32,000 nucleotides of DNA from Guillardia theta nucleomorph (lineage: Eukaryota > Protista > Cryptophyta), in NCBI GenBank assembly GCA_000002975.1, contig AJ010592.2, positions 60,001 to 92,000 on the forward strand, in the 5' to 3' direction. The position numbers were made by a program, and so were the translations under genes. A model generated the notes under the pieces. The model had not been told where the DNA came from, ran no database searches, and worked only from the letters and a program-made list of their open reading frames with translations. Below are positions 7,366-10,075 of the stretch, piece by piece (the stretch's first letter is position 1; the number at the start of each line of letters is the position of its first letter).

Positions 7366-7800
7366 ATGTCTTCAACTGGAAGGTTATTAAAAGAATATAA
7401 TGATATAAAAAAAAATATTGAAATAAACATTAATATAAAGCCGTATGAAGATGATTTGTATAAATGGAAAGGATTCATCATCGGACCAAATGGTACCCCT
7501 TATCAAGGAAAAAGTTTTAATATAGAGTGTAGTGTACCCTTATCATATCCATTATCACCTCCAAAAATTACGTTCGTTGATCAAATTTTTCATCCTAATG
7601 TTTATCCTTCAAATGGAGAAATTTGTCTTGATATATTAAAGAACCAATGGACACCTGCATGGACAATATTATTTTCTTGCCAAGCTATTATTGTTTTATT
7701 AACTAATCCTGAACCAAATAGTCCTTTAAACTGTGACGCAGGAAATTTTTTAAGATCTAAAGATTATAGAGGTTTTAGTTCCATAGCTAAATTTATATAG
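7366..7800 (+). CDS. Ubiquitin-conjugating enzyme E2, Pex4/UBC21-like subtype
   Basis: FHPNV...GEICLDILKNQWTPAWT with catalytic Cys; C-terminal PEPNSPLNCDAGNFLRSKDYRGF is Pex4-like. Confidence 0.9.
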   Translation: MSSTGRLLKEYNDIKKNIEININIKPYEDDLYKWKGFIIGPNGTPYQGKSFNIECSVPLSYPLSPPKITFVDQIFHPNVYPSNGEICLDILKNQWTPAWTILFSCQAIIVLLTNPEPNSPLNCDAGNFLRSKDYRGFSSIAKFI

Positions 7801-7888
7801 CGGTAATAGCTCAGTTGTAAACTGATGGAGAGCATTAGACTGAAGATCTAAGTGTCCCTGGTTCGAATCAATAACCCGGGTTACCGCA
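7800..7888 (+). tRNA. trnF: tRNA-Phe(GAA) with a ~9-nt D-loop and a 7-nt T-loop insertion
   Basis: GCGGTAA TA GCTC AGTTG[TAAACTGAT]GGA GAGC A TTAGA CT-GAA-GA TCTAA GTGTC CCTGG TTCGA[ATCAATA]AC CCGGG TTACCGC A. Confidence 0.9.
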
Positions 7889-7896
7889 ATGGTATT

Positions 7897-8460
7897 TTAA
7901 AATATATTTAATTTCTCCATAACTATTATTATAATTATAATTATATCAAATAATTCTGTAAAAAATAGCATCCTTCGAACAAATCTTATCTCTGTTCCTA
8001 TCATTTTGTCCATACGTTGTATTTTTTTCATTCTATCTCTTGGATTTCCTGATCCAGAACCATATTTTGTTAAAAATTTTTTGACAAACCAATCATTCAG
8101 TGTTGTTCCGGTAATTAACCATATTCCTAGTCTAAAAGTACATAATTCAAGTTCATCAAATTTCATGAAAGGGGGAATTGTGATAAAGTTGGAGGATACG
8201 TTTAATGTAATCGCGTAAATGGTAACGAGTAATCCAATTAAACTCATTTGTACTCCATAATTACATCTTGAAACACTACCATACGCAAAACAGTATGTCT
8301 TTCCATGAACTCTAAATCTAAGTTTATCAAAAATAACCCCAAAAATTTGAGATGATGTAAAAATTTCTAATGAGTAGAAAAAAATTCTTGAAAATGAAAA
8401 TATATTAGGAATGTCACTTTTTCTAACAATCTTTGACAAAAATAAATTATTAAATTGCAT
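7897..8460 (-). CDS. Four-TM membrane protein, synaptogyrin/MARVEL-like
   Basis: IFGVI...C-x8-CNYGV...L.L.V...D.....F..GIW......LNDW pattern plus four hydrophobic segments. Confidence 0.65.
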   Translation of the reverse strand: MQFNNLFLSKIVRKSDIPNIFSFSRIFFYSLEIFTSSQIFGVIFDKLRFRVHGKTYCFAYGSVSRCNYGVQMSLIGLLVTIYAITLNVSSNFITIPPFMKFDELELCTFRLGIWLITGTTLNDWFVKKFLTKYGSGSGNPRDRMKKIQRMDKMIGTEIRFVRRMLFFTELFDIIIIIIIVMEKLNIF

Positions 8461-8534: not shown

Positions 8535-8924
8535 ATGTTAGATATAAATGATAATATTGTTTTAAAAACTAAAAAATTTAAAAATAATCCGCTATTAAAA
8601 AGAAAACAATTTTTGTTAAGCATTGATCGTAAAAAAAAATTTAATATCTCTAAGGAATGGCTTCGAATAGAGCTTTCTAAATACTATAGAATCAAAGACC
8701 CTTCTTTAATATTTATTTTTGGACTTAAAAATAACTTTGGTGGTTTTAAATGTTCTGCCTTTGTATACATTTATTATAATTTGGAAGCTGCAAGGGTTAA
8801 CGAGCCGAAACATAGATTGATAAAAAATAATTTAATGAAACTTGAATTACAGTCATCAAAGCAAAGAAAAGAAAAGAAAAACAAAATGAAAAAATATTTT
8901 GGTAACAAAAACAAAAGTTTTTAA
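8535..8924 (+). CDS. rps24: 40S ribosomal protein S24 (eS24)
   Basis: NPLLKRKQF, IFIFGLKNNFGG, EPKHRL, KQRKEKKNKMKK. Confidence 0.95.
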   Translation: MLDINDNIVLKTKKFKNNPLLKRKQFLLSIDRKKKFNISKEWLRIELSKYYRIKDPSLIFIFGLKNNFGGFKCSAFVYIYYNLEAARVNEPKHRLIKNNLMKLELQSSKQRKEKKNKMKKYFGNKNKSF

Positions 8925-8933
8925 TTTATAAAT

Positions 8934-9227
8934 TTATTCAAGTACTATTTTTCTAGAAAGCTGTCTATTATCTTTAAAGCCGTTGTCTTTATCAAGTTTT
9001 ATAAAATGATTGAATATTCTAAATCCAGATAAGACTTTAAATGATAATTCAAAATTAAAATCAAAAAAATATTCTACAAAACAAAAACCACATGGTAAAA
9101 GTGTTTTATTATTTATTCCTATTATTAATCTTTTAATCTTACCTAATCTTGAAAAAAAATACCATAAAAAATTTTCTTTCAATTTTTTTGACAAACTACC
9201 TACATAAATAGTTTTTGAAAGTTTCAT
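8934..9227 (-). CDS. cbp20: Cap-binding protein CBP20, RRM core only
   Basis: SKTIYVGSLS, IKRLIIG.N..T..PCGFCFVEY, D.D.GFK..RQ. Confidence 0.88.
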   Translation of the reverse strand: MKLSKTIYVGSLSKKLKENFLWYFFSRLGKIKRLIIGINNKTLLPCGFCFVEYFFDFNFELSFKVLSGFRIFNHFIKLDKDNGFKDNRQLSRKIVLE

Positions 9228-9271
9228 TATTTAATACTACCGTTTTAACAATATTTGTAAAAGAAATTAAT

Positions 9272-9982
9272 TTAAATATTTATTTGCTGTAAAAAATTTT
9301 TTACACTTATTACACATTCGAAATTTAACTCATGAAATTTAATATTTGAAAATTCATATATAAGTTCTTTTATATCATCGAAAAAAATTTTATTCCAATC
9401 AAATAAACTTTTTTTTTTTTTATATTCCTTTAATGTCTTTTTTTCAAAAGATTTTGATATTAAACAGATATACTTAACGTCGATGTTGTATAAAGTTAAA
9501 AGATTTGTCATTTGTAACAGAGGATTTAGAATTTTATCGTAAAAATAAATACAATCAAACAAATGGATTACAATAATCTTATATTTTAAAATTTTTAAAC
9601 GTTTAAGTAGCTTTTGAAACCATATAGAACACGAAAAGGTTTCAGTTTGTCCAGGAAAATCTACAAGTATAACATTAGGATTTGTTTTGAAGATTAAAAA
9701 TAATATTTTTTTTTCAATAAAATCATAGTTTTTTTCAAAAAAAAACAATGAAAGTACAATTGATCCGTTATATCCGAGTAAAGTTTCGGATATAATTTCA
9801 TCTTTGTTCGTAATTTCATCAAAGTTATAAAAATTTCCACAAATATTTGAAAAAATAGTATCTAATGTAAAAATAATAACTTTTTGGTTATTGAATTCGT
9901 ATATTTTTTTAATGTTACTACAATATGTGGATTTACCAGCTCCCGGAGAACCGATTACTATTTGTACATATTTTTCTTCCAT
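9272..9982 (-). CDS. GPN-loop GTPase (GPN2/GPN3 type), diverged
   Basis: QIVIGSPGAGKSTYC, LGYNG in place of LGPNG, DFPGQTE. Confidence 0.85.
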   Translation of the reverse strand: MEEKYVQIVIGSPGAGKSTYCSNIKKIYEFNNQKVIIFTLDTIFSNICGNFYNFDEITNKDEIISETLLGYNGSIVLSLFFFEKNYDFIEKKILFLIFKTNPNVILVDFPGQTETFSCSIWFQKLLKRLKILKYKIIVIHLFDCIYFYDKILNPLLQMTNLLTLYNIDVKYICLISKSFEKKTLKEYKKKKSLFDWNKIFFDDIKELIYEFSNIKFHELNFECVISVKNFLQQINI

Positions 9983-9984
9983 AA

Positions 9985-10075
9985 TCCCGTGTGGTCTAGA
10001 GGTTATGATGTCTGGTTACAATCAGATTTCATTTATAATCCCAGAAGATCACGAGTTCGATTCTCGTCACGGGAG
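9985..10075 (+). tRNA. trnE: tRNA-Glu(TTC) with two anticodon-loop insertions (alternative reading: ACA anticodon with one 18-nt intron)
   Basis: TCCCGTG TG GTCT AGAGGTT ATGATG TCTGG T[TACAATCAGA]T-TTC-A[TTTATAAT]C CCAGA AGATC ACGAG TTCGATT CTCGT CACGGGA G; Glu-type body; T6 run follows. Confidence 0.75.

Follow-up and report, generated by a model that had tools for sequence, protein, structure and literature searches.

Does one of the hypothetical genes of the Guillardia theta nucleomorph encode a protein that shapes membranes? Whether periplastid vesicles are real, and how membrane might be shaped there without coats or a Golgi, has been debated since Gibbs' micrographs. Zauner et al. (2019; PMC6559170) describe vesicles and attached membrane zones in the periplastid compartment and call for membrane-shaping proteins to resolve the vesicle question, and Cavalier-Smith (2018) expected a periplastid machinery that is pared-down and barely recognisable. 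A preliminary description of a 32,000-nucleotide stretch of nucleomorph DNA (contig AJ010592.2, positions 60,001 to 92,000; hereafter the window) had read one of its genes, orf187, as a tetraspan vesicle protein of the synaptogyrin/MARVEL type.

The orf187 gene and its transcript

The window is AT-rich, gene-dense and eukaryotic, and the gene is orf187 (Gthechr2151) of chromosome 2 of the G. theta nucleomorph, which is predicted to encode a four-helix membrane protein resembling MARVEL proteins and synaptogyrin. Its reading frame (7897–8460, minus strand) runs from ATG to TAA over 187 amino acids; it is real and intact, and the peptides quoted in the preliminary description are present in it. 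Two public runs, one perhaps the source of this DNA, yielded contigs identical to the gene at every letter, and a relative from its 90% cluster has the same short C-terminus, so that a frameshift as the cause of this short C-terminus was ruled out. Compared with its orthologues, identity per codon position is 0.60–0.71 at position 2 and 0.37–0.43 at position 3, a coding pattern, with the greatest divergence among orthologues at third codon positions.

In one RNA run, of which 6% was read, 110 + 35 reads carry untemplated poly(A) at sites ~7792 and ~7798, showing that the orf187 mRNA is polyadenylated and extends ~100 bases beyond the stop codon. This 3' UTR (7792–7896, minus strand), marked by poly-T read ends, lies antisense across a tRNA-Phe gene and the last codons of a neighbouring E2 gene. 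Minus-strand read depth reaches its maximum of 714 at the orf187 3' end, the top of the 2.1 kb mapped, the reads being short, 3'-biased tags and thus a poor gauge of expression level. The tRNA-Phe-like gene itself (GAA anticodon, 7800–7888) was recognised by eye and was missed by ARAGORN and Rfam. Transcripts from the two strands converge over 7768–8193, where plus-strand tags at 7839–8051 suggest that the E2 mRNA crosses the tRNA into orf187; a comparable transcript overlap was seen for rps24 and CBP20 (8762–9300).

Orthologues, gene order and a second family

orf187 is already known as a conserved hypothetical gene. Kim et al. (2022; PMC9548191) place Gt187/Gthechr2151, CPARA_2gp236, Ha194 and genes of Chroomonas in a single row of their supplement, each named 'hypothetical protein'; in file 4 of that supplement the row lists two Chroomonas genes, CMESO_285 and CMESO_249, and HAN_1g105 is entered under both the orf187 and the CMESO_331 rows. 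A sequence search with orf187 likewise recovered CPARA_2gp236. The gene had been called an ORFan in the preliminary description, which is incorrect given ~30 orthologues at 36–59% BLAST identity and its listing by Kim et al. (2022). Syntenic orthologues occur in all eight published cryptophyte nucleomorphs, those of colourless species included, and all are annotated 'hypothetical'. The conserved gene order is hcf136, GPN GTPase, CBP20, rps24, orf187, E2 and rpl8, with hsp90 sometimes inserted. Since an orthologue is retained in colourless Cryptomonas paramecium, a photosynthetic role is unlikely.

Local variation in this block includes hsp90 directly upstream of the orf187 orthologue in some marine cryptophytes (L001:3979–5967 and L012:2087–4159) and the lack of a called rps24 in loci L001–L003. 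A syntenic tRNA adjoining the GPN GTPase received a different anticodon call in each genome (window 9985–10075, L001:2088–2180, L004:3747–3836, L012:104–194 and L016:3191–3283), as would be expected if an intron masks the true anticodon.

A full HMMER search of 1.84 billion proteins returned 14 matches, none recognisably outside cryptophyte nucleomorphs. The diatom and haptophyte homologues looked for in following up the preliminary description were not found in this search, nor was a red-algal or other bridging homologue, so that a red-algal origin would be read from genomic location only. Word-based searches covered proteins of 0.55–1.75 times the query length, a range that fusions could escape.

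Among the matches of the full HMMER search were also CMESO_331, from the Chroomonas nucleomorph, and two proteins resembling it, and a further search added members from Cryptomonas curvata. This second family (CMESO_331, CPARA_1gp069 and Ha154; L014:8001–8450, L007:6001–6537 and L009:1761–2219) is annotated as hypothetical across Chroomonas, Hemiselmis and Cryptomonas, and comparison of its profile with that of the orf187 family gave a probability of 97.6% and E 3e-12. Seven of eight paralogues scored far above 200 shuffles each. The paralogues are 149–178 residues long, have four clearly hydrophobic segments, adjoin ndc80 or a snf1 kinase and occupy their own side of a tree relative to the orf187 orthologues; both families coexist in one metagenome sample on separate long contigs. 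AlphaFold predicts for a paralogue the same four-helix bundle as for orf187. Metagenome scans for further paralogues yielded no confirmed locus, all 36 pattern matches being GC-rich chance. A 398-aa ORF with hydrophobic segments on the far side of ndc80 (L014:4979–6175) is at most a candidate for a third, very diverged copy, its similarity to the paralogues being weak (hhalign probability 2.6%).

Similarity to MARVEL proteins

With orf187 as the sole query there was no match in Pfam or the PDB and no usable match in an Atlas feature search; the MARVEL signal emerges only when orthologues are added. A profile of 27 orthologues, run against 177,635 sequences from the PDB with an E limit of 10, found synaptogyrin-1 as its sole match (E 6.1e-4, TM1 to TM3), and a 20-sequence profile likewise gave this one match (E 0.0048). 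At E up to 0.05, 11 of 27 members matched the Pfam MARVEL family (PF01284), with 1.7e-4 as the lowest value, and 2 of 27 matched the second-ranked family; in the set of 20, 14 matched MARVEL at E up to 1. No member reached the curated MARVEL cut-off of 32.8 bits, the best being 22.1 bits (E 1.7e-4, P0005). The TMEM179/claudin-like family PF26158 was matched by no member at E up to 1 and CD20 by 1 of 27 (E 0.047). Thus a check of the hmmscan type favoured MARVEL for the orthologues, but below the cut-off and with nothing for the query by itself. For the paralogues, a profile gave no match in the PDB, and the joined two-family profile matched synaptogyrin with E 0.016, weaker than the orf187 family alone.

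Atlas features for the orthologue P0048 placed three synaptogyrin clusters on top (0.89), with TMEM179 likewise at 0.89 and a CASP cluster at 0.85, scores below 0.9 being leads only; amongst Atlas structures synaptogyrin and TMEM179B tied at TM 0.66–0.67. The AlphaFold model of orf187 (pLDDT 80) is a four-helix bundle with helices at residues 20–47, 63–89, 103–131 and 140–186 and a beta-hairpin after TM1. Compared with solved structures it scored Z 14.7 against sarcospan, 14–15 against designed bundles, 12.9 against synaptophysin and 12.3 against synaptogyrin, with claudin-fold and FceRI-beta chains within ~1 Z of synaptogyrin; identity in the structural alignments was 13% for synaptogyrin and 4–9% for most others. 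Foldseek gave no row with E <0.001 for the orf187 or paralogue models. The synaptogyrin structure 8A6M was found for orf187 with probability 0.97 and E 0.6, and it was the first row (E 0.16) for the independently folded paralogue model, which scored Z 13.0 against synaptophysin (PDB 9BRA chain s). Against solved structures the shape is not diagnostic; the fold is compatible with MARVEL and the case rests on sequence: structure prediction upheld the four-helix bundle, but the Foldseek values stay above that threshold and the fold alone is not MARVEL-specific.

The synaptogyrin-like reading of the preliminary description thus gains from the profile match, the Pfam trend, the language-model features and the four-helix model, but each signal is weak, the Pfam cut-off was missed and TMEM179 tied. 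Judged from the sequence comparisons, orf187 is probably homologous to MARVEL proteins. Most likely it is a nucleomorph-specific, two-paralogue variant descended from MARVEL proteins, and we class it neither as a synaptogyrin nor as a formal Pfam MARVEL member. We found no paper linking nucleomorphs with synaptogyrin or MARVEL in a search of largely open-access literature, and the main text of PMC6559170 names neither a MARVEL protein nor orf187.

Conserved residues and topology

HMMER against PDB 8A6M reproduced the synaptogyrin alignment that the preliminary description had given, including the FG ending TM1, both cysteines, the glycine of YG, W114 and W124. The residue pairs (orf187/synaptogyrin, the latter numbered after PMC10352133) are G41/G41, C57/C59, C66/C68, E103/D108, W114/W119, W124/W130 and K128/K134, and the alignment stops short of TM4. 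Of the four hydrophobic segments described earlier (all on the minus strand), TM2 (approximately residues 68–88; 8197–8259) and TM4 (approximately 165–182; 7915–7968, followed in G. theta by a very short tail) are clearly hydrophobic, but TM1 (approximately 22–44; 8329–8397) and TM3 (approximately 103–124; 8089–8154) are marginal. TM1 is polar, carries K/R25 and E32 in 34 of 34 orthologues and ends in F40-G41; TM3 carries E/D103, K/R110, W114 and W124. Between TM1 and TM2, after the predicted beta-hairpin, loop 1 contains C57-x8-C66 (8263–8292). Loop 3 (7969–8088) is basic, with ~40 residues and a mean of 12.6 K+R, is largely helical in the model, has near-invariant D142, G155 and R159, and is missing from the paralogue family; its resemblance to the first helix of NC2-alpha (E 0.62) is taken as chance.

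Both cysteines, G61, W124, F40 and E32 are invariant in the 34 orthologues, K128 is kept in 33 and W114 in 32, and the cysteine pair and W124 persist in 42 of 42 sequences when the eight paralogues are included. The conservation expected of the cysteines and tryptophans therefore held, but that of YGV only in part (Gly 33/34, Y/F 31/34, V 19/34). The synaptogyrin tryptophan triad (W115, W119, W161) is incomplete, the W115 site being K/R110 in all 34 orthologues and TM4 having no conserved Trp. The synaptogyrin cysteines C59 and C68 form no disulfide in the NMR structure (PMC10352133), so that a disulfide in orf187 is a guess.

Positions 25 (TM1) and 103 (TM3), both aligned free of gaps, bear opposite charges in 42 of 42 sequences, K/R–E/D in 36 and E–K in 6; all six charge-swapped sequences are Cryptomonas-type paralogues, so the swap counts as one event. 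Two helical turns deeper, E32 and K/R110 occur together in 34 of 34 orthologues, and 8 of 8 paralogues have neither. We infer two TM1–TM3 ion pairs, 25/103 and 32/110, which would account for polar TM1 and TM3 inside the membrane. MARVEL proteins have as a signature a basic residue near the start of TM1 that pairs with an acidic one near the start of TM3; K/R25–E/D103 agrees with this, E103 aligning with synaptogyrin D108 and K/R25 being the putative counterpart of the synaptogyrin Arg.

The orf187 orthologues average 17.5 K+R in loops 1 and 3 and 9.4 in the termini and loop 2, contrary to the positive-inside rule for the synaptogyrin topology; in the paralogue family the termini and loop 2 have 10.3 and loops 1 and 3 have 4.6, and the rule fits cytosolic termini. 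Synaptogyrin has basic patches on both sides of the membrane (K102/K103 and K134/K136); in orf187 K128 (33/34) aligns with K134, and loop 2 has only about one K/R (K100 in 23/34).

The neighbouring E2 gene and trafficking genes

The neighbour of orf187 (7366–7800, plus strand) encodes an E2 enzyme of the Pex4/Ubc10 family, whose closest PDB chain is Arabidopsis PEX4 (E 1e-47; UbcH5/Ubc4 1e-30), an E2 of Pex4 type in a compartment without known peroxisomes. At loci L012 and L013 only 54 codons were called at the E2 site, so the gene there may be broken or spliced. The preliminary description had proposed that orf187 and the adjacent E2 form an undescribed system: the E2 is indeed Pex4-like, but nucleomorph E2s of this family are already published (PMC12412216) and the two genes adjoin within an extended stretch of conserved order whose genes are otherwise unrelated, so that a joint orf187–E2 system is not supported. 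The claim that nucleomorphs are nearly devoid of trafficking genes proved overstated, cornichon, a Sey1-like GTPase and COPI-like WD40 candidates having been reported earlier (PMC6559170). The same study, Zauner et al. (2019), found no SNARE or Rab.

Possible functions of orf187

We lean, with modest confidence, towards reading orf187 as a strongly diverged MARVEL-domain tetraspan, closest among characterised proteins to synaptogyrin, that would shape a periplastid membrane or hold it against another. MARVEL proteins serve many different functions. They act at curved or juxtaposed membranes (PMC3870249), and synaptogyrin alone shrinks liposomes via basic patches, with K134 inside a patch that is needed and the remodelling into small vesicles depending on phosphatidylserine (PMC10352133). 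A periplastid membrane-shaping role of orf187 is plausible. The gene would descend from the red-algal endosymbiont, and cryptophyte nucleomorphs would have retained it together with one or more paralogues. Proteins encoded in the nucleomorph are synthesised in the periplastid compartment, and this one, which lacks an obvious cleavable leader, would enter a membrane on the symbiont side. Only ~20 residues precede TM1 and a plastid transit peptide is not evident, so its likely locations are the nucleomorph envelope, the periplastid membrane and the vesicles or tubules of the compartment. There it may organise membranes without enzymatic activity, as a four-helix bundle that a putatively luminal cysteine pair and the TM1–TM3 ion pairs stabilise and whose basic patches could bind anionic lipid and so keep membranes curved or in apposition. 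The data show the gene, its expression, conservation, paralogy and motifs; the fold is predicted, and MARVEL homology, descent from the red alga, location, topology and the lipid-binding or shaping mechanism are inferred.

The charges of TM1 and TM3 could instead, with the basic helix, bind protein rather than lipid, orf187 then being a MARVEL-derived accessory subunit or chaperone of the SELMA derlins, of a transporter or of a nucleomorph pore membrane. The invariant charges of polar TM1 and TM3 would suit this, the near-invariant D142, G155 and R159 of loop 3 exceed the needs of a generic basic patch, ~50% identity between genera points to a partner under constraint, and synaptophysin binds the V-ATPase (PDB 9BRA) as TARP and sarcospan tetraspans are accessory subunits. 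We nevertheless think it rather unlikely, the charges being able to pair inside orf187 itself, no partner having emerged, and the HMMER search of 1.84 billion proteins having revealed no homologue in the diatoms, haptophytes and apicomplexans that share SELMA. Less probable still is membership of a different tetraspan lineage (TMEM179/claudin-like or MS4A/sarcospan-like), in which case the likeness to synaptogyrin would come down to an ancient shared fold and a pre-TM2 cysteine pair, and orf187 would be a membrane scaffold or junction protein. TMEM179B stands level with synaptogyrin (TM 0.66–0.67, feature score 0.89), sarcospan (Z 14.7) is the top natural match, with claudin-fold and FceRI-beta chains within ~1 Z of synaptogyrin, and the loop 1 beta-hairpin would fit; yet claudins and MS4A proteins are present in the PDB and the sequence match is to synaptogyrin only, Pfam TMEM179/claudin was reported for no member and CD20 for 1 of 27 (E 0.047), and structural-alignment identity is 13% with synaptogyrin vs 4–9% with most others.

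Two further readings we hold to be improbable. Pex4 normally requires a membrane anchor, Pex22, and orf187 might anchor the adjacent E2 in a peroxisome-like or ERAD-like ubiquitin system, the two genes being convergent neighbours in every long locus examined and having overlapping transcripts in G. theta. However, Pex22 is single-spanning, eukaryotic neighbour genes are seldom functionally linked, the paralogue adjoins ndc80 with no E2 there, and the adjacency is unspecific because the whole block from hcf136 to rpl8 is conserved; in Cryptomonas, nucleomorph chromosomes are for the most part collinear at gene level (PMC9548191). We give scarcely any credence to a small redox or heme protein with the cysteine pair catalytic as in DsbB/VKOR, even though that pair is invariant, the bundle shape matches designed heme maquettes and UniRef automatically names the paralogue CMESO_331 'cytochrome b561 domain-containing'. 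Conservation of His columns reaches at most 29% in the orf187 family (family 1) and 13% in the second (family 2), which rules out that name since b561 would need four conserved His heme ligands; there was no Pfam b561, DsbB or VKOR match, and C-x8-C differs from a CxxC motif.

For the membrane-shaping MARVEL tetraspan that we favour, a bolder extension is possible though doubtful, namely that a small nucleomorph MARVEL family (orf187 and one or two paralogues) forms the structural core of a minimal coat-free periplastid vesicle or apposition system in which cornichon, the Sey1-like GTPase and possibly relic SNAREs also take part, and that gyrin-type MARVEL proteins are older than the divergence of red algae from animals. 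Gyrin-like MARVEL proteins have so far been traced to unicellular holozoans, and the nucleomorph family hints at a greater age. Two gene families that are 'hypothetical' in all sequenced cryptophyte nucleomorphs gain a fold assignment here, and a conserved, expressed tetraspan family can serve as an immuno-EM marker and as material for liposome assays, a testable candidate for membrane shaping in complex plastids.

Comparison with known systems

Synaptogyrin-1 (PDB 8A6M; PMC10352133) is the closest known system, sharing with orf187 the tetraspan layout, the FG at the end of TM1, the C-x8-C of loop 1, the G after the second Cys, an acidic start of TM3, and W119, W130 and K134, matched by W114, W124 and K128. 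The similarity is only remote (E 6e-4, 13–16% identity); unlike synaptogyrin, orf187 has K/R in place of W115, an extra Glu in TM1, a basic rather than acidic loop 1, a 40-residue basic loop 3 and no long cytosolic tail. Synaptophysin (PDB 9BRA chain s) has the same bundle, with Z 12.9 over 152 residues for orf187, but its sequence went unmatched even with an E limit of 10, and orf187 lacks its repeat tail. TMEM179/TMEM179B (PF26158) is similar in Atlas comparisons (TM 0.66–0.67, feature score 0.89), whereas its Pfam model matches no member. The MARVEL-related scaffolds Nce102 of fungi and CASP/CASPL of plants (PMC3870249, PMC10675793) are likewise tetraspan organisers of membrane domains, and an Arg and an Asp are conserved in the CASP domain, a CASP cluster scoring 0.85 in the feature comparison; they differ in giving no sequence match and in that the periplastid compartment has no known cortical furrow or wall domain. 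Cornichon/Erv14, the Sey1-like GTPase and the COPI-like WD40 proteins (PMC6559170) belong to families unrelated to orf187, but resemble it in being nucleomorph-encoded and conserved, and have been proposed for periplastid vesicles or membrane attachment zones.
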